Shown here: piece after piece, positions 2,218-63,230 of the stretch | How the letters are laid out: each line of letters starts with the position of its first letter | Numbering within the stretch: position 1 is the first letter of the stretch | Made by a program: the position numbers and the translations under genes | Assembly: GCA_977017575.1 (NCBI GenBank) | Contig: CDRNVI010000055.1 | Location: 124,001 to 188,000, forward strand | DNA: 64,000 nucleotides | Source of the DNA: Paramoeba atlantica | Lineage: Eukaryota > Protista > Discosea | Direction of reading: 5' to 3' | The notes under the pieces: generated by a model | Told to the model about the DNA's origin: nothing | Seen by the model: the letters and a program-made list of their open reading frames with translations, nothing else | Databases searched by the model: none

Positions 2218-2885
2218 TTGGCCGAGGGTTCCGGTGGGGGGGAACCCCGTTAACAACGTGACATTGAATGTTTTTGTTCTATGCAGGCGTGTTTCCTTTT
2301 ATCTGTGTTTGTGCGTGTAAATTATCTACGATATGTTTTGGTACAATTTGAGAGTAAGATTGGATTATTCATACTTGTTTATTTATATATGTTTGTTTAT
2401 TCATATATGTTTTCATGTATATGTTTCCAGGGAGCCCCTCGGCGTGGATTTCTAATAGTCCACGTTTTGAAATTTAGCCGAGGGGCTGTTATGTATTTGC
2501 CTGCTGGCCCTTCGGGGCACATAATTTCTTCAAATTATGATTTGTGATCTATAATTACATGGATATTTTACTATTTCTGATATATCCTTGTTAGGTTGTT
2601 GCTTCTACTACGTTTAAGTTTTTGTGCCCACCCACCAAACCCCCAGCCATTTGGCCGAGGGTTCCGGTGGGGGGGAACCCCGTTAACAACGTGACATTGA
2701 ATATTTTTGTTCTATGCAGGCGTGTTTCCTTTTATCTGTGTTTGTGCGTGTGAATTATCTACGATATGTTTTGGTACAATTTGAGAGTAAGATTGGATTA
2801 TTCATACTTGTTTATTTATATATGTTTGTTTATTCATATATGTTTTCATGTATATGTTTCCAGGGAGCCCCTCGGCGTGGATTTC
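2218..2885 (+). repeat. Split direct repeat B1 (2218-2452) / B2 (2651-2885) of element #1
   Basis: Two near-identical 235-bp copies, both ending ...CCTCGGCGTGGATTTC. Confidence 0.9.
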
Positions 2886-17882: not shown

Positions 17883-19130
17883 TTGAGTCTGTTGATGGGG
17901 GTAAGCAGGATTACTCCCGAGGTACGCGTGGCATTGGACGCGATGTCCGGAATGTGGAGCTCGTCGACGTGGGAAACACGAGCAAGGTTGTGGGAAAGGT
18001 TCCTGGTATATTGCACCGGGAATCATATAAGACAGACACCCCTTCACGCAGTGACGTTCGTGCAACTTCTGCCAGTGTCAATACAAACCAAGGTGTCCTA
18101 CGGAAGGGCGCTAATGACCTTATTCAACCTGATCGGATTAAATACTGTCCCAATAAAATTCTTTTGCAAAGCTCTTCAGGGACAAGGAGCAGAGGAGCCA
18201 GTACATCAGATGCAGCCGTTGACACCATTCCTACTGAACAAGATACGAAGAAGGTGCACCCAATCCGAAAGTCAAACATTGCTAATGTGCTGGAAGGCAG
18301 CATCCCGTTGGTCCGAAACCGCCAATTTGACCAAGGACAAATTCGTGGAAATATCACCGCAAAAGATTGTAATTGCTTGGGGAAGGGGGACAAAGGCTAC
18401 AAGGTGCAACCCGTGGCGCGAATCGATGTACACAGTCATCCAGGGCCAGGGCACAATCGAATTGGCTCAATACGTACGTACGCTCAGGTCATGGGATCGA
18501 ATGTGCCGGACAAATGTGAGAGAGATGGACAGGAATATAAAGAGGGTGCTGGGAGAGGGTTTCGGCACACATTCCGCCAAGAGAGGGGCGGTAACGCAAT
18601 TATTCCAGGAAGTTGTCAAGGGGACAGTGGGAATCGAAGATGTGAAAAAATTAGCGAAGCACCAGCAAATCGAGTCCCTGTTGCGTTACAATTCAAACCC
18701 AGTTACCACCGCCAGTTACCACCGAGACATTGCAGCGTGAGAATGACACCGCCCGGTACCGGATATAACAAGGTACTAAGGAACTAGGGTGGGTGTCATT
18801 CAGCATAATCTTTGGAATGTGTTGTGTTTTTTCACTTCAAAAGAAGTGTTTTTTTAAGAAGAAGATAATAGAATAAAGAATATTTTCTTGTAGCATATAA
18901 AAGGAGTTAAAAAAGATAAGCTGGCTGCTCGCGCTCGATCTGGTCAAATCTTCGGATTTGACTTGCGTGCTGCGTGGCACAGCTCCTAGCAAGCGATAAG
19001 GGGGGGCTTGTCCTAGGGAGGTAACATCTCCTCGGAGATATATTGCCTAAAAATCATCAAATCATCATCAGTTACCACCGCGCTAGCTCTAGGAACGGGG
19101 AAGGCGACAGCCAAACTGAGGACGCTTTAG
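17883..19130 (+). pseudogene. Tyrosine recombinase of element #4, interrupted near its C-terminus
   Basis: WKAASRWSE, GTHSAKRGA, LAKHQQIESLLRY; after the insert it continues PVTTALALGT and stops at 19128-19130. Confidence 0.82.
18725..19068 (+). mobile_element. Short non-coding retroposon (SINE-like or LINE 3' end) with an (ATC)n tail
   Basis: 13-bp TSD CAGTTACCACCGC at 18700-18712 and 19069-19081; tail AAATCATCAAATCATCAT; homologous to the 3' part of 59617-60111. Confidence 0.85.
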
Positions 19131-21028: not shown

Positions 21029-24000
21029 ATGTTTTTCTTCCGGAAGTGCAATTCGGAGACGACAAACTCAGTGTTCCACGAATGTCAAACACCGCCTCCT
21101 TTGGATCAGCGCACAACTCATAACTTTGGAGACACGGTTTCACCTATCAGCGCAGAAGGAGTAAATACAGGAGTTATGCCCCATGAGAAGCTTAATCGGG
21201 AAGAAGACAAGAGCCAAGAAGCGATTGCTCATGAAATGCGATTATCAATCCGACCCGGAGTTGATTTTCCGATGGCATTTGAAAAACTGCAGGAAGAAGC
21301 CGAGAGCTCCGAAGTAGGACACAAATGCGCAGTGGCCTGGTGTTTCGATCAACAGCCTTTGTTGAACATATCTTCAGGGACAGTGCAATCCGCGAAACGG
21401 AAATATGGCAAAAGACAGGTCGTTCTTTCATACGAAGGAATTTATGGACATAAGGAAGGAAATGGCTTCACGGGGGTGCTTCCACCGCAAACGAGCATAC
21501 GCATCTACAAGATCATATGGCTGAGAATTGGAGGAATTGCTAAAACGGAAAAAAGTAAAGCTGACGATCGCAAGACCACGTCTACGCAACCCAAGGTGAA
21601 TCACACTGAAAACGACCTAGATTTCGAACCTTTGCCCACTAGTAAAAGCATCGAAGCGGAATTCATACCTTGTGTTATCTCCATATACCGCGAGCTGATG
21701 AGGGACTATTCAGACAGTTCCTACGAATATCGGAATAAGGTATGGAACAGAGTCCTGTCCGCCATGAAGTTCTCTTTGACCACGATTCGCGAGGCCAGTA
21801 AGAAGCGTCGTCGGAGACGACCGTTCCCCGAACCTTTGTCCCACAATGTAGAGCAAAACGAAGATTCTAAAGACAATAGAGCAATTAAAAAAGCCACGCG
21901 GCTTATTTTGGAAGGTTGTGTCACCAAAGCCACCAAGGCTCTGGACCAAGAAAACCAAACGAGCATATTGTCGGATCAAGAAATCCTTAAAAAGCTGCGA
22001 GACCTGCACCCAGATTCGGAATCGAGCATTCAGCAGCCGGCCGACGCTCCACTCATTGCTTTTATTTCAACCCAGGAACTGAGGACTGGGGGGCGTAGAC
22101 TAGCGAAAGGAGCAGCTCCAGGCCTTCCGGAACAACTGATTGCATCGTTCGTCTACTACTGGACGATGAAATATGCTGTTCGGCATTGTGCCATATGATA
22201 GCAGATCTGATTAACGGTCTACTCTCTACAGAGGTAATGAGTCGATTGAAACGGGCGCGGTTAATTGCGATAGAAAAGAACGGGGGTGGGATCCGTCCAG
22301 TCGCAGTTGGGGAGCTATTTCTAAAATTGGCGGAGGTGGTAATGTTGCAGAGATATGAACACACATTGGGCCCCCTTTTTGAACCGTGGCAGTTTGGAGT
22401 CCAAACGAGATCGGGCTGTGAGAGGATAATACACAATCTGCAAGAACTGCATTCTCAAGGGAAGGCAATTCTGTCGATAGATTTAAAAAACGCGTTTAAC
22501 TCTCCAAGACGAGATGAAATGGCACGATCGCTTCTATCATACGCAACGCTGCGCCCATTCCAACGGTTATTCTTTGCAGAATATTCGTCAAAGTCAGAGC
22601 TGTTGTACTACGGGAAGGATGGTAAACTGTGTGGAATCGTAGAAAGCGCCTCGGGTGTGCGCCAAGGATCGCCGTTGTCTACCCTCATTTTTTGCGCCTT
22701 TTTACAATCAGTTCTCGCGACAATTTCTCTGGAATTTCCCGATATTAAAATTTATGCCTATATAGACGATATTAACTTGGTATCTAACGACGCCGGGATG
22801 CTATCTAAAGCCTTCTTTCGGATCTGGGATCTACTGGACGAAAGAAATGTACAGCTGTCCAATGACAAATGCATATGGTTCCAAGGGACAAGGGGCACGG
22901 AGATTCCAGAGGAGCTAGAAAATGCAAAGGTGAGAACAGAAACGACAGCACTCAAAGCCCTGGGGGCATATATTGGTAAAGGTGAAACCGTAAATAGTCT
23001 ATTATTGCAGTGCCTGCGAAAGCACAAAACGATTTTCAGACGGCTGAAAAAGATGGGAGCAAGTAATGTGTCATGTCTGGTCTTATCGAAATGCGTCAAC
23101 GGGAGACACCGCTACCACATCAGGGCACACAAACCTGCATGTACAGAAAACCTTACACGGGAGTTCGACGATGAGGTGGAAAACGTGCTCCATAAATGGT
23201 TCGGGAAGCTCTCCGAAACACAAATAGCATGGGCTAGACTACCCCTCAAGATGGGAGGATTGGGTTTACCTTCGACGCACAAACTCAGGGAAGCCTCTTA
23301 CAATTCTTCGCGATATGAAGCTTTCGAGCACAAAAAAATCTATTCTGCTCAAGCTACATATCCGCAAATATTGAAAGAGACCCACGCCCCACCGGACGAA
23401 GAAAACGCCACGGAAAAGAAGCATAATGAGACCATTAAGAAAGAACTGTCCAAGAACACCAAAATTGCGCGCATCATGGCGTCCACCTGTCAAAAAGGGA
23501 GCTATCAATGGCTGCAATCCACGGAGCGTTATATACCGTCGCCGCAATATACTCTTGCAGCAATGCCAAGATTGGGAATTAAACATCCGAAACTTCCGTC
23601 CGCTCTCTCCTGCCCCGGATGCAAAATTGTTCTGGATCCGGAAAATGCTCTGACACACATTCCTGGATGTGTGCGATGCTCAGGAACCAACAGCACCACG
23701 AAGCACAATGCACTGGCCAGATACATATATGATTTATGTCAAAAGGCCGGCATTCCATGTGGACGAGAACCTAGGGAGTTCTCCGCTTACATATGCTCAA
23801 TATGCAATTCAGAAGTCGAGGAGGAGAGGGAGTCGCAGCACTCGAAGGTTTGTCACGGCAGCACTTTCCGAAGATCAGGACCCGACCTCGTAATATATTG
23901 GGCTACAGGCCCGATATTCTACGATTTAACAGTAGTACACGATCTTGCTCCATCCATGAAATCGATGTCAGTGCAGAAGGCGTTCCGCGATGCTATCACA

Positions 24001-24255
24001 CGCAAGGAAACCAGGTACGTAGCGTCGAAACTGATTCCGAAAGAGCAATTCAAATGCCTCCCGGTCCTCTCGAGCGGGGCGATGCACCCAAATACTAAAG
24101 AAGTGTTGCAAATTTTGGCGGAGAAATGTGGACGTGAACAGCAATCCATACAAAGGGACTTCACACTCCACCTTCAAGAAATAAACGGCGCAATCTGTCT
24201 CTCCCAGCTCCGGAAATATGTCGCACAAGAGGACGGGGACAATATTTCCTTCTGA
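21029..24255 (+). pseudogene. CRE-type RT-RLE polyprotein (ORFs 21029..22198 and 22186..24255)
   Basis: A one-base deletion in the PGPSGTTD motif joins the two ORFs. Confidence 0.87.
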
Positions 24256-24360
24256 TTCTAGGTAGAACGGCGAACTAGGGGAGATTTAAGAAAAATTAGG
24301 GTAGGATAAATTTAGGGTAGGATAAATTAGGGCAGGATAAATTAGGGTAGGAAAAAAAAA
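21040..24360 (+). mobile_element. CRE/SLACS-like non-LTR retrotransposon, 5'-truncated, one frameshift (~22130), poly(A) tail
   Basis: RT motifs GGIRPVAVGE, DLKNAFNS, GVRQGSPLS, YAYIDD; CPGC...HIPGC zinc knuckle; RLE GPDLV...YDLTV...KETRY; 3' UTR with TTAGGG repeats and A9. Confidence 0.9.
24296..24351 (+). repeat. Four tandem TTAGGG(T/C)AGGATAAA units in the CRE 3' UTR (also at 57224-57279)
   Basis: Read directly from the sequence, just before poly(A). Confidence 0.9.
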
Positions 24361-24366
24361 GTCGAG

Positions 24367-30823: not shown

Positions 30824-31100
30824 ATTGATTGATTGATTGATTGATTGATTTTAAGGGCATTTATCCCATAGGGACGTACCCTCCCGGAGATAGCCGGGCA
30901 CTATCCAAAATTAACTTCTTTTAGCCGCGCGCGCCAGGCTATGAAAATCATAGCTTTTGCCATGCGTCACAGTTTTTAGGCTGTAGGCATTACAGACTGC
31001 ACAGCGGCCAAGCATCCAATGATTATTAGTTGGTGCGTATGGGTATTTACCCTAGTTTCCTAGTGTTTCGTTAATAAAAAAATGTTTCGTTAAATAAATA
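30824..31100 (-). mobile_element. Short non-coding retroposon with an (AATC)n tail
   Basis: (GATT)n at 30824-30850; minus-strand 3' end GGATAAATGCCCTTAAAATCAATC resembles the end of 18725-19068; partial structured motif at 31049-31075. No TSD found and the 5' boundary is approximate. Confidence 0.6.
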
Positions 31101-32167: not shown

Positions 32168-32458
32168 TTGTTGTTGTTGTTGTTGTTTAACCCGTTTGGC
32201 CATGACTGGCTATGGGTTCAGAGTACACCCTAGTTATTTAGTGCTCGTGCGAAACGGCACCGGGTATTACCGTACTCCGTGGGTGGTACGCTGTAAGTCG
32301 CGCGCAGACTTTCCCAGAGGGATGCCGCACTCGCAGATAGACGAGCAATACCTGTCAGGTTGCGTGGCCTGACTCGTCATCCGTGACTTCAATGCCCGAT
32401 GGATTCGCATCCTAGGGCAAAGAAGTAGTGGATCAGTCGTTATATTCTGTTCCACCAC
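32168..32458 (-). mobile_element. Non-coding retroposon 3' end with an (AAC)n tail
   Basis: (GTT)n at 32168-32187; structured motif at 32221-32277. The 5' boundary is uncertain. Confidence 0.6.
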
Positions 32459-32527
32459 CAGGGATGACTCACGCTAGGGTGTGTGGAGCTTGCGAGGCTC
32501 TCTCACCAGCGGAGCTCGACCACATAT

Positions 32528-32551
32528 AGATACAGTTTCTGTACCTTGTTG
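32528..32551 (+). other. Spliced-leader exon remnant (3' 24 nt)
   Basis: AGATACAGTTTCTGTACCTTGTTG versus the kinetoplastid SL 3' half GATACAGTTTCTGTACTATATTG; not followed by a GT donor plus intron. Confidence 0.75.
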
Positions 32552-32578
32552 TTTTTTTCTCTTATCTTTATCGTTACC

Positions 32579-56587: not shown

Positions 56588-57288
56588 TTCCTGGATGTGT
56601 GCGATGCTCAGGAACCAACAGCACCACGAAGCACAATGCACTGGCCAGATACATATATGATTTATGTCAAAAGGCCGGCATTCCATGTGGACGAGAACCT
56701 AGGGAGTTCTCCGCTTACATATGCTCAATATGCAATTCAGAAGTCGAGGAGGAGAGGGAGTCGCAGCACTCGAAGGTTTGTCACGGCAGCACTTTCCGAA
56801 GATCAGGACCCGACCTCGTAATATATTGGGCTACAGGCCCGATATTCTACGATTTAACAGTAGTACACGATCTTGCTCCATCTATGAAATCGATGTCAGT
56901 GCAGAAGGCGTTCCGCGATGCTATCACACGCAAGGAAACCAGGTACGTAGCGTCGAAACTGATTCCGAAAGAGCAATTCAAATGCCTCCCGGTCCTCTCG
57001 AGCGGGGCGATGCACCCAAATACTAAAGAAGTGTTGCAAATTTTGGCGGAGAAATGTGGACGTGAACAGCAATCCATACAAAGGGACTTCACACTCCACC
57101 TTCAAGAAATAAACGGCGCAATCTGTCTCTCCCAGCTCAGGAAATATGTCGCACAAGAGGACGGGGACAATATTTCCTTCTGATTCTAGGTAGAACGGCG
57201 AACTAGGGGAGATTTAAGAAAAATTAGGGTAGGATAAATTTAGGGTAGGATAAATTAGGGCAGGATAAATTAGGGTAGGAAAAAAAAA
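56588..57288 (+). mobile_element. 5'-truncated, nearly identical copy of the 3' end of the 21040-24360 CRE element
   Basis: Matches 23660-24360 with two substitutions seen by eye, including the TTAGGG-repeat UTR and poly(A). Confidence 0.92.
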
Positions 57289-59616
57289 GTCGAGACGCAA
57301 GAGGAGGAAAGAGTAAAGAGAAATGGGAAACGGTTTCCTTTGAATGCTACTTTCTCGAGTATTTTGGACATGTCCGATGTGCCGCTTGTCAATTTCTTCC
57401 AGGTTCTAGAGTGTATCTGGGCTGCCGTAGTTGTTGTGCCATTATACTTGTGTGCTGCTGGTCGTGGGCGCTTTGTATTTCGAGGTTGTCGGTCCGAGCT
57501 GAGTTGTTCACTTGTTGCTCAAGAACCGAGTACCTGGATGATTCATATGCTGCCCTTCTTGTCGTTGCGCATGCTGTTAATCCTAAGCCCCCTTTCTTCG
57601 TTGGCATGCGTATTAGCGACATTTGTTCTTCATTTAATTCTCCGAACCACGATTCGACCACTTTCTCAGTTTCCGTGTCAAAGCCCTCCGCTGAATTTTC
57701 GGAGGCGGCGGGATTGTGAACACGCATATGATATGTTTGTCTTACATTGACACACTTGGAGAGAATCTTGCATGACAGGTTGCTAGGGCCCATGCGCTTG
57801 AGTCGACGGAATATGTCATTGTGTTTCTCCAGCGACTTCGACAAACATTGACTCACAACTTTATCATCTCCAACGAACGCTCCCAGTACTTTGAACGCCT
57901 CGTCTTCCCCAGTGACTCCCGCGTCTCGAAGTGCGTGTGGCATACGCTTTTTCCGTTTCCACCGAACCATATGCATTTGTGGCTCGCCACAAATAAGCTT
58001 TGATGCGTCAGTAGCTCGCGGAGGTATAGGAAAGCATCTGTCAACTCTTCGGGGTTGTGAGAAGCTAGTGTGATGTCGTCAACATAGGCATTTATTTTAA
58101 CTTTCGGATACTTTGCCGCCAGAGTTTCCAACACTGGTTGAAGCAACGTGCAGAAGTACACCGTCGAAAGGGTCGAGCCTTGTCTTACTCCGTTCGTACT
58201 TAGAATAGTACCGACGTGCTTGCCTTCGTGACCGTAATAGAGAAGTTCTGAAGGAGCTGCGTACTCGGCATGAAAGAATCTTTGGAATGGTCGAAGTGTC
58301 GCCAATCCGTAAACTGCTCTGGCCAGGTCATTTCTTGATGGGGCGTTGAACGCGTTCTTGGCGTCGATTGACATGATACATGAACCTTCCTTGTATAGGG
58401 AGTTCAATGTATGTACAACCCTTTCGCAGCCGGACTTCGCCATCACTCCTTGTTGTATCGGAGCGAAAAGTGGTTGGAGAGTGAATTCGAAACGTTGCAC
58501 CAAAACCAAACCTGCTAGTTTCATTATCACTTCCCCAACTGCCATTGGACGGACACCCCCATTGGTCTTGGGTATTACAATGAGTCTTGATCTCGTTAAC
58601 CGCCGCATTACGTCTTTTGAGAGAAAGCCATTCACAAGGTCCATGAGCATATGACAGAAATTCGCACAACAGACGGGATCATCTATCAGGATACGGACGA
58701 TCGTGTCTGTCATTCCCGTGGGCCCCGGGCTGGCTCCCTTGGCGAGGCGTAACCCGGCGGAACGTAACTCAGTGGGATGCAGACCACCGAGAATCGGAGC
58801 GTCTCTGGGAAGATCGAATTCATAAGAGCTTTGCGGGTGGAGGTCTTGGAGTTTTTGTAAAGTTTCTTCGTCCGAAAGTTGATGTGCAGCGAACTTACGA
58901 TCTAGTATTTGCGTTGCTTTTTTCGTGGACCCCTCTATCATTAGTCGAGTTGCTTTTTTAATGGCCCGTTTATCGGTCTTTTCTTCCTTGGATTCTTCGT
59001 TCTCGCAAGTGTTCATTTCACAGCTCACAGGCCGTCGACGGCTTCTTCGGATACCAGCTCGTTGAATATCCGCGAGGGAAGTCTTCATCGCTGACAGGAC
59101 ACTGTGCCAAATTTTGTGTCTCTCGGGGTATGAATTTTGAATGTATTCGCTCATGATTTCACGAAACGTTGCTATAACTCCTGGTATTGATTCGGGTTTT
59201 ATGACTCGTGCTGTCGGAATAGGTGTGTGATCCAAGTCATCGTCACTCCACTCTAGGACCGGTAGAGCGGCTGGCACTGGCGAGGCAACGTTTTCAGGCT
59301 CGGTGGGTGACTTGGGTGTCGGAGGTGCAGTGTGCCAGTACAACTTGTAGATTCTGACGGTGTCATGAGAGGGGATAGTTCCTGAGAATTCTTGGTCGGG
59401 TTTATGGCCTACGACTCCCGTGTACTGAATTGACAGTTTGCCGAAGCCTTTTCTTTTGTAAATGCTGGTTACTCTCCCGATCGAGACGTTCATCCGTTCT
59501 TGATTGTCGAAGGCCCACGCAACAGTGCACATGGTGCCCTTTTTGATGCTTTGTGATGCGTTCCAAATTTCCGTGGCAGGAACCGGATATTGAAGCTGCA
59601 GGAACCGGATATTGAA

Positions 59617-60111
59617 CCCAGCTTCCCGAGCTAACTCACCCGGCGTCGCATAACAAGACGCTAAAGAACTAGGGTGAGCACAACGAAGACAATATGGATG
59701 ACACTACCCGGTGCCAGTAAAACGAGGCACTAAATAATTAGGGTGGATGTCATTCTGGCAACGTAGAATGGGTGGCACCGCCCGGTACCGAATATAACAA
59801 GGTACTAAGAAACTAGGGTGGGTGCCATTCGGGCTAATCTTCGGAATGTATTTGTGTTTTTTTTTTATCCACCCTCAAAAGATAGAGTGGTTTTTTTTGG
59901 TCAAGGGGCGCCTTATTTGCATTACCTAAGGTGCAGGGGTATAGCGCACCCCACCTCCCTAGCTGTAACCTAACTCCTCTCCAAGCGGAGGTCAGCCATA
60001 GCAAGCTACGGCTGGCTCTCCGGATACGTCGCAAGACGTATTCGGACTGCCCGTTTGGGGAGTTGAGGGGCCATAACTTTTCGGAGTCAAAAGGCCCAAT
60101 ACATCATCATC
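59617..60111 (+). mobile_element. Short non-coding retroposon with three tandem structured motifs and a (CAT)n tail
   Basis: 11-bp TSD ATTGAAGCTGC at 59589-59599 and 60112-60122; tail ACATCATCATC. Confidence 0.88.
59635..59827 (+). ncRNA. Three tandem copies of an unidentified structured RNA motif
   Basis: Copies at 59635-59678, 59698-59753 and 59773-59827 with compensatory changes in both stems; further copies at 18741-18801(+), 32221-32277(-) and 31049-31075(-, partial). Confidence 0.6.
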
Positions 60112-61652
60112 ATTGAAGCTGCGGGGAGAGTTGCGATAGTGATTCGCAAATCTCATTGGAGTCAACTTGCTCGGCGAATATGACTGTCTGAGCTGAATTG
60201 CAGTTGCGGCTCTCTGGATCAGTACAATTTGCCGATTCACTACTTTGTTCTTGAGTTGGTACGGTTGGCTCCGTCTTTGAATTGTTAATTTCGTCAACAT
60301 CGTTGGCTTCTAAACTCGTATCCAAAATTTGGTCCTTTAGTGTTTCGAAGGGGAGTGGGAGAGGACTGGGAAGCTCGTTAGGCTCGCCTTGCGGGCCTCT
60401 GTTTGACTTCGAGAGTATGCTATTTGAGATTTCAACCTCATGGGTCGAGTGGCGAGTTCCGTCGAATGGGGTCGAAAGAGAGGGGGATTCGCAATCGTAG
60501 AAGTTATCTCCCGTTGCATTTGCGTCTGGCTCTGTTTCCTGTGGGTGTTTCGGTGAGCACGTCTCGCTGTCATTGTTGTATGTAATGCGTACACGATTGT
60601 CACGCAATTACGCGACAGCCTACCAAAGGCCGCATGGCTAGGTTCTATCAATTCGTAGACCTACACAGCTGAAAGTTTTGATTGATTGATTGATCGATTG
60701 ATGTAAACTTGAAAGAGTAATTTTGGTTCCGTCATAGTCAGATGACGAAGTAAAAAATGTATTTGATAGTTTACGAGAGGAAATTTAGACGAGAACAAAT
60801 ACGAATTTGAAAAGACTCCTTTTTCTCGAATGGCCCTACGAGGCACATAATCTCTGAATATATCTAAATATAGGATGCTCCTTTGTTGTCTTCGTATCAT
60901 TGTTTATCGAAGCGCGTGGGTGTAGTGTGTGTTGTCGGTGTTTCCTTCTGTTTCGTTGTCGGCGTTTCAACGTTATTCGTCCTCACTGTTTCAACCTCGG
61001 GCGCGCCGGAAAAGATATCGAATCCGCGGACGTCATGAAACCATCCGTCTCCGTGGTTGGAATATCCGTTAACATATGCTTGCGCACCGAGCTAAACTGA
61101 ATTACGAAAACGTGCGACATGCTCTTCAACTAGAAATTGAAAAGATGTCAGCATACACAGTCGTAACTCAACTGCGAGAGTACATCCCAACGGAGAACTG
61201 GATGGGAGGCCTTCGGCTTTAGAGAGCTCCAGGAAATTCTTCAACCGTGGCGATATCTTTCTTTCCTTTCGACCATTCTCTTCCTATCATTTCGGAATCT
61301 TTCGATTAGCTTCGAAAGACCGGGAAAAGAACCCTCCAGTGCGTTTTTATGGTTTACGGTTTACGATTGGTTTACGGTAATTGAAGCATTTATATGTAGA
61401 ATAAGAAGTATGCATGCTGAACGAACTATTTATAAACGAAAAGGGGGTTATAAACAAAAAGGGGGTTATAAACAGCCAAATTAGATTTATGCACTCGTGA
61501 TTGCGCGCTCCGAATTAAAAAAAAGCGTCAAAGACATTAACATATTGACTTTTCGGTGGGCTCTCATTTGTATTCGACAATAGTATTCCTTGGAGGGTCA
61601 GATTCCTTGGAGGGTTTCTTCAGATTCCTTGGAAGGTCAGATTCCTTGGAGG

Positions 61653-61669
61653 GTTTCTGTACCTTGTTG
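61653..61669 (+). other. Spliced-leader exon remnant (3' 17 nt)
   Basis: GTTTCTGTACCTTGTTG, 33 nt upstream of ATG 61703. Confidence 0.7.
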
Positions 61670-61702
61670 AATTCTTTTTACTACTTTGCTTTTCTTTCTT
61701 TT

Positions 61703-63230
61703 ATGTCAGAACCTCCCCCGAGGGCGGCGCAAGGCACGCCGTCGCATCAGCAGCAGAACACTGCAGCAGTGAGGTCCACTGGCGTAAAGGAGCACAACTT
61801 GAACTTTACGGAACAAGCGAATAGACACGAGATTGGATCATGGGACCAGTTTGAGGCAAACAAGAAACTCATCCAAGACGCTAGCACGTACGACGACCTC
61901 ATGTACACAACCCCCATTCCACAGCATATTCCCCTCAACTGGCAAAAGAAGATGGAACACAAAGCGCAAAGCATCGAGAAAAACCCAACGTCAGACCACG
62001 GCCGCCACAACGCGAAAGACGAGGAAACCGCTTTTGCCAGTGTTCGGAGAAATGAAATTCTACGAAGAAGTCAAACTGGAGAGTCATCCTTGAAAATTAA
62101 GATCAGAAAAGAGACACGACTGAAGAAAACTCCGAAAAAGGTAAAAGTGATACTCCGTAGCTCTGATCTAACGAAGGCGAACCTCGGACAAGCGGACATG
62201 TCACATGACGAAGGATCGGAGAGCTCATCTGCATCAGGATCAGACATCTCGGAGGACGATCGGGTGCCCGAGGTCGCCGAAGAAACAATGAAAGCTCCGG
62301 ACCAAATACTAAAGATAATCAAAGACTGGGGAAAAGGAACTACTTGCGAGCTACATTGGAAATTCCGCCACAGCAGTGAGATTTATCAGTCGATTGGAGA
62401 AGTTGTTACGCGACATTCTAGAAAAGGTGCAATCAGGGTAAAGATTTCCTACACACCGCAGCATCAGCCAGGTCCATCAGGATTTCTATATCTACCTGCA
62501 TCTCACAAGATTAACATCTTCCGATTACGGGTGGTAAAGCTCAACCGTATTGTGACACAAACGCCATTTTTGGATATCGAAGAAACACAAGATTGCGACA
62601 CGGGCTGCGACTTAGAGCCTCTTCCCCCACTCGCCCACATCGACCCCACGTTCGCCGCTCACGTCATAGCAATCTTTAGATCAATCCTGCGAGGATATCC
62701 CACGCTCAAGCTTATAACAGAGAAAACATCCGTCTGGCACAAGTTTCTAAACGCACCCCGCGACTCACTCACCACTGTGCGACAAGCGATCCAGCGGAAG
62801 TATCATGTGCCAAACAAACTGCGCAACGAGGAGCCGGCGTTCTCCTCAGCTGACGAAAAACTTGAACGTGAAGTCGACCGCCGATCAATCCGCAGTGCGC
62901 TTCGAACGGCTAGGGCTGGTAACCTAAGCAAAGCTACGCGTATCCTCGACAACGTATATTTTGACTCGAACCTTAGAGTTGAGGAGAAAGTAGCGAAGCT
63001 CAAGAGTCTACATCCCGATGGAGAGCGCCCACAAGCTCAGACGGGCGCAGACCCCCGAACAGGAATCATCGAAAAACACGAACTTCGGGCCGCGATAGAG
63101 AAACTGGCTCCGGGAGCTTCCCCGGGCCCTACGGGATTGAGTGAAGCCATGTTGCGCCTACTTGCGGATGACGAGGAATCCAGCACCGCGCTCTGCCATA
63201 TGTTACGTGATGTAGTGAACGGGGACATAC
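61703..63230 (+). pseudogene. CRE-type polyprotein N-terminus with an Ataxin-2/Pbp1 LsmAD-like domain
   Basis: WDQFEANKKL...STYDDLMYTT.I...DEETAFASVRR at ~61841-62049. Confidence 0.75.

Follow-up and report, generated by a model that had tools for sequence, protein, structure and literature searches.

A bulged RNA hairpin shared by LINEs and SINEs as a candidate docking site in non-LTR retroposons

Three tandem copies of a structured motif lie at 59635–59827 of the window, by which we mean the whole stretch of 64,000 nucleotides that was analysed. They raise the question of which kind of RNA is formed here, which elements carry it and what it does for them. A reading made from the sequence alone had assigned the motif to retroposons and had proposed either an undescribed ribozyme or an element bound by reverse transcriptase (RT) or a host protein.

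Fold of the cassette and its copies in the window

The tandem triplet is present at this place on the forward strand, the outer stem of its last unit extending 3 nt further to position 59830. Each of the three units M1, M2 and M3 folds alike, singly or jointly, into a bulged RNA hairpin of 45–65 nt, hereafter the cassette. In the triplet (59635–59830) the outer stem is variable in sequence, comprises 7–14 bp and invariably closes in CCC/GGG. Stacked directly on it is an inner stem of 6 bp with the order G·U, G-C, three variable pairs and C-G, which carries an A-rich loop of 9–11 nt with the conserved pattern A..AAC(A/G)A and thus AC(A/G)A at its 3′ end. On the 3′ strand a one-sided 9-nt bulge, AANNAAYUA, adjoins CCC/GGG. 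The consensus of the sequence-only reading was right overall and needed one correction, since the G regarded there as an unpaired junction base pairs with the U of CUAA, and among 68 distinct copies 55 have G·U here and 5 have G-C. The 5′ strand thus runs on without interruption, and AANNAAYUA is a one-sided bulge. An alternative CTA-N6-TAG mini-hairpin, thought to be possible in all copies, could not be upheld: CUA is replaced by CCA or UCA in some copies and UAG shows no compensating change.

A covariance model (R1) was built from 37 distinct copies and detected exactly five copies in the window. M1 (59635–59678, forward strand, 60.3 bits) is composed of the outer stem CUCACCC/GGGUGAG, the inner stem GGCGUC/GACGCU, the loop GCAUAACAA and the bulge AAAGAACUA. 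M2 (59696–59755, forward strand, 64.8 bits) has a 14-bp outer stem interrupted by a 1-nt bulge, the inner stem GGUGCC/GGCACU and the bulge AAAUAAUUA, and M3 (59766–59830, forward strand, 67.6 bits) has a long outer stem, likewise with a 1-nt bulge, the inner stem GGUACC/GGUACU and the bulge AAGAAACUA. A single cassette of the M3 type, copy A, is located at 18741–18801 on the forward strand (64.6 bits) and differs from M3 of the triplet by a compensated exchange of G-C for A-U in the outer stem. The fifth copy, a B-type cassette at 32219–32279 on the reverse strand (46.8 bits), has the outer stem CGGAGUAC/GUACUCUG, a 7-nt internal loop on the 5′ side and an inner stem of 4 bp plus G·U. A sixth copy had been counted at 31050–31062; this stretch fits the 13-nt tail pattern alone and gave no match to the covariance model even at E 10 with filters off.

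All five window copies sit in short non-coding retroposons with target site duplications (TSDs), inserted in larger elements. The window cassettes are thus parts of nested SINE-like inserts and not of the neighbouring RT genes, which explains why the motifs occur beside and not within these genes. The triplet belongs to a slightly 5′-truncated copy of a family named SINE-C (59600–60111, forward strand). Its host is a LINE on the reverse strand, with an RT open reading frame (RVT_1, 57853–59532) and without cassette. In the insert, 14 extra nucleotides that repeat the target precede the leader end and M1–M3; two T-runs and their hairpin lead on to the body, after which a 3′ hairpin and a (CAT)n tail follow. 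The insert is flanked by the duplication attgaagctgc (59589–59599 and 60112–60122). Empty sites exist: the flanks 58800–59602 and 60112–60575 are contiguous in the contigs C54, C92 and C43, where their overlap of about 11–14 bp represents the target site duplication, and a DNA contig of a public run joins position 59588 to 60112.

The remaining two window copies are carried by related inserts. Copy A lies in a 5′-truncated SINE-A (18712–19069, forward strand), with M3 as the only cassette left before the body and the (CAT)n-like tail; the insert interrupts an RT element and has 11-bp TSDs (agttaccaccg, 18701–18711 and 19070–19080). A location of copy A between ORF1 and ORF2, or a role as stop-codon read-through signal, was considered and rejected, as the reading frame merely enters the SINE insert and the uninterrupted element is found elsewhere. 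The B-type cassette belongs to a copy of SINE-B of about 355 nt (32170–32524, reverse strand).

Selection on the fold of the sense transcript

The pattern CCCGG-N16-28-TARNNAAYTAGGG has 306 matches in the 45.7-Mb assembly and none in the reversed control, and the genome search with R1 yielded at least 150 matches with 55–68 bits. Covariation was scored among copies that all derive from one organism. In a MAFFT alignment of 37 distinct copies (A2) the inner helix is paired in 96.8% of cases, and the covariation score reaches 0.385, compared to 0.241 ± 0.016 for shuffled alignments (none of 500 reached the observed value) and 0.07–0.18 for slid partners. An alignment of 68 distinct copies fitted to the model, which for this reason leans towards it while A2 is independent of it, gave 0.409 versus 0.250 for shuffles (again none of 500) and 0.07–0.15 for slid partners. 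In this alignment 97% of the inner-helix cells are paired, and 5 of the 6 inner pairs, and 11 of all 13 pairs, are changed on both sides. The covariation of both stems noted in the sequence-only reading was thereby confirmed, and RNAalifold predicted the identical fold unaided.

Indeed, two compensated exchanges affect the two most conserved pairs. In a further SINE family, missed by the search pattern, the outermost pair of CCC/GGG is changed from C-G to G-C (GCC...GGC) and the top pair of the inner stem from C-G to U-A. Among eight subfamilies of the SINE head 16% of the columns vary in the cassette cores, 36% in the outer stems, with compensation, and 66% in the spacers. The sense strand folds with a minimum free energy of −88.3 kcal/mol (z −6.2) and the antisense strand with −69.6 kcal/mol (z −1.6), and the near-invariant G·U closing pair as well as other wobble pairs would be A·C on the opposite strand. 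It is the sense transcript that adopts the fold, and selection maintains the cassette.

Beyond its unusual cassette, the family with GCC/GGC (loci L191–L193, L195 and L196, e.g. G000 C4:212430–212760) shares the leader end GCGATCCCAGCCTCCCGAGCTAA and terminates in the 3′ hairpin CATAGCC..GGCCAAACGG and an (ATCTT)n tail. The same 3′ hairpin was seen in other families with (CAA)n, (AACAAT)n and (TAAC)n tails.

Retroposons that carry the cassette

All copies examined belong to retroposons or to a retroposon-derived satellite, and no host gene or host RNA with the cassette was found. At least six families of short non-coding retroposons have the cassette in common. They are dispersed, with TSDs, 5′ truncations, simple-repeat tails and an empty site, as is typical for SINEs. 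The SINE-C repeat of about 500 nt (59614–60113) has at least 40 genome copies of 92–98% identity; the right end is constant (...CATCATCAT) and the left ends vary, the 5′-truncation signature of non-LTR retroposition. Comparison of 20 copies revealed that full-length elements of about 540 nt start precisely at GTCAGGGCAUCCGG (GTCAGGG...), have TSDs of 11–14 bp and contain a structured 62-nt leader before M1, the triplet forming the 5′ head. SINE-A is a sister family, whose full-length member (L018:1293–1801) carries the leader and M1–M3. In SINE-B, with at least 30 copies of 97–99% identity, about 55 nt lie between the single cassette and a 3′ hairpin downstream of it (CAUAGCC..GGCCAAACGG), and the tail is (CAA)n. 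This family is the only one with the cassette near the tail, whereas SINE-A and SINE-C carry theirs in the 5′ head, some 240 nt away from the 3′ end.

Further families differ in layout. One combines two cassettes with a (TAAC)n tail and is inserted within a LINE with a weak LsmAD match in ORF1. Another has a single cassette, a C-rich 5′ region and an (ACATA)n tail, and a third contains a C-rich region and, 48 nt from the end of the element, a cassette. The family with the (ATCTT)n tail has the leader and one cassette. The number of cassettes per SINE thus ranges from one to three, and the cassette-bearing SINEs have at least four different tails and 3′ hairpins, with (CAT)n, (CAA)n, (TAAC)n, (ATCTT)n and (ACATA)n. 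Moreover, the identical head of leader and triplet is joined to either a (CAT)n-type or a (CAA)n-type 3′ module. SINE heads typically derive from RNA polymerase III (pol III) transcripts (tRNA, 7SL or 5S RNA). ARAGORN detected no tRNA-derived head in these elements, and the full-length SINE matched no Rfam family that would indicate a pol III RNA.

Several features of these inserts were noted in passing. Directly 3′ of the last cassette a T-run, a short hairpin and a second T-run (59831–59900 and 18802–18850) are conserved between SINE-A and SINE-C, with the terminator-like sequences cacttc-aaaa-gaagtg-T7 and ccaccctc...gagtgg-T8. Such T-runs are stop signals in a pol III transcript, so that the full-length SINE RNA is probably a read-through product of RNA polymerase II. 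At the 5′ junctions of SINE inserts short extra copies are present (59600–59613 and 18712–18719; also at L185, L187 and L006). Those in the window, of 14 nt and 7–8 nt, repeat the target just upstream, and others repeat the first 13–19 nt of the element itself (GTCAGGGCAUCC...), up to three times in L187. Judged from the sequence, this looks like template jumping of the reverse transcriptase at RNA 5′ ends. In L043 (G000 C87:170500–177500) a tandem unit of about 2.3–2.5 kb, repeated at least three times, combines a cassette-bearing element with a tRNA-Ser(UGA) gene about 930 nt downstream. The locus L038 (G000 C4:245163–255162; compare window 61654–63228) contains a 3.9-kb LINE with ORF1 and an RT-encoding ORF2, the LsmAD match of ORF1 (E 0.0013) being below the Pfam cutoff. 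Every unit of the 4.9-kb L038 array has the same SINE insertion with a 13-bp TSD, hence the array arose through duplication once the SINE was in place.

The cassette also occurs in the 3′ UTR of an autonomous element, LINE-X, a LINE with a single ORF and motifs for RT, a CCHC zinc finger and a restriction-like endonuclease. In the copy L170, on the reverse strand, the RT reading frame (RVT_1, 4e-13) stops 190 nt upstream of two cassettes, and another 75 nt or so lie between these and a poly(A) tail; the CCHC and PD..D..K endonuclease motifs of this frame were recognised by eye in alignments. A sequence search of LINE-X against solved structures gave no match, so the designation as R2/CRE-like rests on the RVT_1 match together with the CCHC and PD..D..K motifs. 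Two cassettes are present as well in a second subfamily (L017, L034), whose protein is 69% identical and whose UTR is unalignable upstream of them. The 22-nt inner hairpin of M3 in the SINE is identical to that of cassette M2 in the LINE-X 3′ UTR. A third subfamily with an ORF of 1196 amino acids (64% identity) and a 215-nt UTR with poly(A) has no cassette, which is consequently not indispensable to that RT lineage.

Some further observations concern LINE-X, its relatives and other LINE copies. Satellite arrays at C192:1–43000 and C85:73000–91200 consist of at least 25 tandem units of 1.86 kb. Each unit joins the C-terminal end of the LINE-X ORF to the cassette-bearing 3′ UTR and also contains poly(A) tracts and an additional fragment of a cassette. 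The array was considered as a source gene of the cassette and discarded, the unit being a satellite from the 3′ end of LINE-X without Rfam match. A distant relative of LINE-X in the window (ORF 22186–24255, 37% identity) closes in (AAAUUAGGGUAGGAU)4 followed by A9, with sites at 24293–24361 and 57221–57289. The 15-nt repeat (AAATTAGGGTAGGAT), of which only five arrays exist in the genome, resembles the 3′ strand of the cassette, AAYTAGGGT(A/G)G, and is a lead only. Furthermore, at the start of LINE copies the 5′ UTR is directly preceded by the 3′ part of a spliced leader of the kinetoplastid type (..ACAGTTTCTGTACCTTGTTG; window 32525–32552, forward strand; L038 about 2495–2520, reverse strand), and a SINE-B is inserted right at one such 5′ end. 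These joints suggest that trans-spliced LINE mRNAs may serve as templates of retrotransposition. A literature search with the spliced-leader string gave no match.

A pattern scan of metagenomes matched at least 120 stretches. Among the 80 listed loci (L044–L123) that were re-scored with the covariance model, only two reached 23.6–24.3 bits, compared to 47–68 bits for real copies. These re-scored matches are thus attributed to chance, and the 80 loci provide no evidence of the cassette outside the source organism. The ENA assembly ERZ24900291 contains identical cassettes; it probably stems from the same organism and is therefore not an independent source. Surveys of kinetoplastid mobile elements describe CRE, INGI, TATE and VIPER as well as derivatives of truncated LINEs, with Pr77 as the known 5′ RNA element (PMC12278014), and mention no such cassette.

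Function of the cassette and comparison with known systems

We regard the cassette as probably a modular cis-acting RNA handle of non-LTR retroposons, a candidate docking site for a protein of the retrotransposition ribonucleoprotein or for a host factor, and not as a self-cleaving ribozyme. The docking role is what we infer from fold, conservation and distribution. The bulged hairpin would display the conserved unpaired nucleotides of loop and bulge as a sequence- and shape-specific site, and possible binders are the RT of the LINE, or its RNA-binding surface, and a host factor with a role in stabilising or localising the RNA. With cassettes in tandem the avidity would be higher, so that non-coding RNAs could compete for the LINE machinery, and the pair in LINE-X as well as the triplet in the SINEs would fit such a model. 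The head of the SINE-A and SINE-C type can be understood as three diverged cassettes plus the structured 62-nt leader, combined with different LINE-type 3′ hairpins and tails.

The two halves of the original proposal fared differently. An undescribed, covarying retroposon RNA of the sense strand is indeed present, and a candidate binding element is the best-supported reading of it; the ribozyme is unsupported, given the lack of an Rfam match, the nested fold, the varied positions and the lack of a defined truncation site. The sequence-only reading had itself seen no hammerhead, HDV, twister or pistol core, and this held true: cmscan against Rfam, applied to the whole window at gathering thresholds and to the triplet and the full-length SINE at E 10, returned chance matches of 13–17 bits only, none to hammerhead, twister, pistol or hatchet, and the CUGANGA/GAAA core is absent from the sequence. 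HDV-like ribozymes fold into a nested double pseudoknot (P1, P1.1, P2, P3, P4). Such a fold was not matched by cmscan up to E 10, and covariation supports just two nested helices, a simple hairpin without multi-helix core, junction or pseudoknot. A new self-cleaving ribozyme that trims retroposon transcripts would account for the near-invariant unpaired nucleotides and for the tandem copies, as in some ribozyme-bearing retroelements, and three or four independent 5′-truncated SINE-C copies do start within 15 nt just upstream of M2. Nevertheless their starts (72, 82, 83 and 86 of the 500-nt window copy, 59614–60113) lie loosely before M2 and define no single nucleotide, truncation points being scattered among copies, and the 5′ end of the full-length SINE (GTCAGGG) is located 62 nt upstream of M1, off any cassette, so that no cleavage site coincides with it. 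Moreover, hundreds of retroposed copies have kept their cassettes intact, be it at a 5′ or internal position or in the 3′ UTR, and we consider self-cleavage most improbable. Very unlikely as well is a bolder idea, namely a new, very small class of self-cleaving or catalytic RNA, or a "universal adaptor" aptamer by which one SINE head could hijack several unrelated LINE machineries; activity or binding would then reside in the conserved bulge and loop, and the retroposon RNA would be processed or loaded with the help of the tandem copies.

Promoters can be built of tandem units as well, such as the "monomers" of the mouse L1 5′ UTR, and the position of cassettes at the 5′ head of the most abundant SINEs and their varying number would suit promoter monomers or protein-binding DNA repeats. 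A role at the DNA level is very unlikely, however, in view of the compensatory changes, the near-invariant G·U, the difference in z between sense and antisense strand and the presence of the cassette in the LINE 3′ UTR and near SINE 3′ ends. Kissing between cassettes, within one RNA or between SINE and LINE, could be mediated by the palindromes of the bulge, CUAG or, in M2, UAAUUA, one of which is found in essentially all copies; with 4–6 nt the contact would be weak, and a covariation test of it is impossible as UAG is invariant. We attach hardly any probability to this explanation. A module unrelated to RT, which would bind a cellular protein for stability, export, localisation or 3′ processing, for example together with U-rich tracts, is a less remote explanation, though still rather unlikely. 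It would agree with the use of one head with several LINE-type 3′ ends, with the LINE-X subfamily that manages without cassette and with the T-runs or polypyrimidine tracts that LINE-X, SINE-A, SINE-C and the L005-type element have behind their last cassette. On the other hand, no U-tract follows the cassette in SINE-B or in the L024-type element, and the restriction of all examined copies to retroposons or their satellite, with none in a host gene or host RNA, speaks against such a module. The mixing of heads and tails and the cassette-free LINE-X subfamily weaken a simple 3′ recognition signal and leave real room for a host factor acting on stability, localisation or processing.

If the docked protein is the LINE RT, the cassette would offer a compact and mutable system for template choice by R2/CRE-like RTs, of relevance to RT-based gene insertion; if it is a host factor, the cassette would mark an interface between retroposon and host in organisms with polycistronic transcription. 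In either case the cassette adds a structured RNA family, so far uncatalogued, that numbers hundreds of copies and covaries cleanly, from a little-studied, kinetoplastid-like protist that uses a spliced leader. It comes with an unusual SINE design, whose head is a tripled LINE-UTR hairpin instead of a pol III RNA and is recombined with several LINE-type tails.

Among small structured RNAs, the preQ1-I aptamer is formed by a hairpin of 5–6 bp and an A-rich tail, which pairs with the loop to an H-type pseudoknot. The cassette also has a hairpin of 5–6 bp followed by an A-rich tail, ending ..AAAAACUA-GG. However, its tail pairs with CCC 5′ of the hairpin in a nested fold, its loop contains no partner for UAG, it resides in a eukaryotic retroposon, and the preQ1-I model RF00522 gave no match at E 10. 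At the 5′ end of trypanosomatid retroposons of the ingi/L1Tc type stands Pr77/L1TcRz, an HDV-like ribozyme and promoter (PMC12278014). Like the cassette, Pr77 is a conserved structured 5′ element common to autonomous and non-autonomous retroposons. Unlike it, Pr77 fills the first 77 nt and cleaves at +1, whereas the cassette starts 62 nt inside the SINE, occurs in 3′ UTRs as well, and shows neither a double pseudoknot nor an HDV-like Rfam match. Conserved central domains of obscure function are shared within SINE superfamilies (CORE, V, Deu and others). They resemble the cassette as modules of many SINE families that differ elsewhere; the cassette is set apart by being short, tandem, clearly structured with covariation, placed in the head and not in the body, and hosted by a kinetoplastid-like protist. 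For trypanosomatids, a survey of mobile elements lists only the truncated-LINE derivatives RIME, NARTc and SIDER as such short elements (PMC12278014).

Stringent LINEs recognise a 3′ stem-loop that is common to their partner SINEs (PMC4176376). In UnaL2/UnaSINE1 and ZfL2 (PMC4176376), as here, a conserved hairpin with specific unpaired nucleotides is found in the LINE 3′ UTR and in non-coding SINEs, the cassette being shared by two LINE-X subfamilies, each with two copies in the 3′ UTR, and at least six SINE families. The stringent hairpin stands directly before the tail and is partner-specific, while the main SINEs have three cassettes in their 5′ head and combine these with several 3′ hairpins and tails. 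The SINE tails (CAT)n, (CAA)n, (TAAC)n, (ATCTT)n and (ACATA)n do not match the poly(A) of LINE-X, and with so many tails and 3′ hairpins the cassette is not a partner-specific 3′ recognition signal.

Protein-binding RNA motifs at both the 5′ and the 3′ end of R2 were reportedly described by Christensen, Ye and Eickbush in 2006. The R2 protein binds its own 3′ UTR with an affinity that depends on two stem-loops (PMC11194090). The cassette differs from these motifs in sequence, shares no Rfam similarity with them, and is absent from one LINE-X subfamily; LINE-X ends in poly(A) and is not known as rDNA-specific, and the cassette is a putative binding site. Nevertheless, in both cases structured RNA occupies the UTR of a LINE that has one ORF and a restriction-like endonuclease, the two stem-loops for R2 affinity have a counterpart in the two cassettes of LINE-X, and R2 uses RNA modules at its 5′ as well as its 3′ end. 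A structured RNA module common to a LINE and SINEs is of a known kind; its tripling in a 5′ head that is combined with several tails is new.
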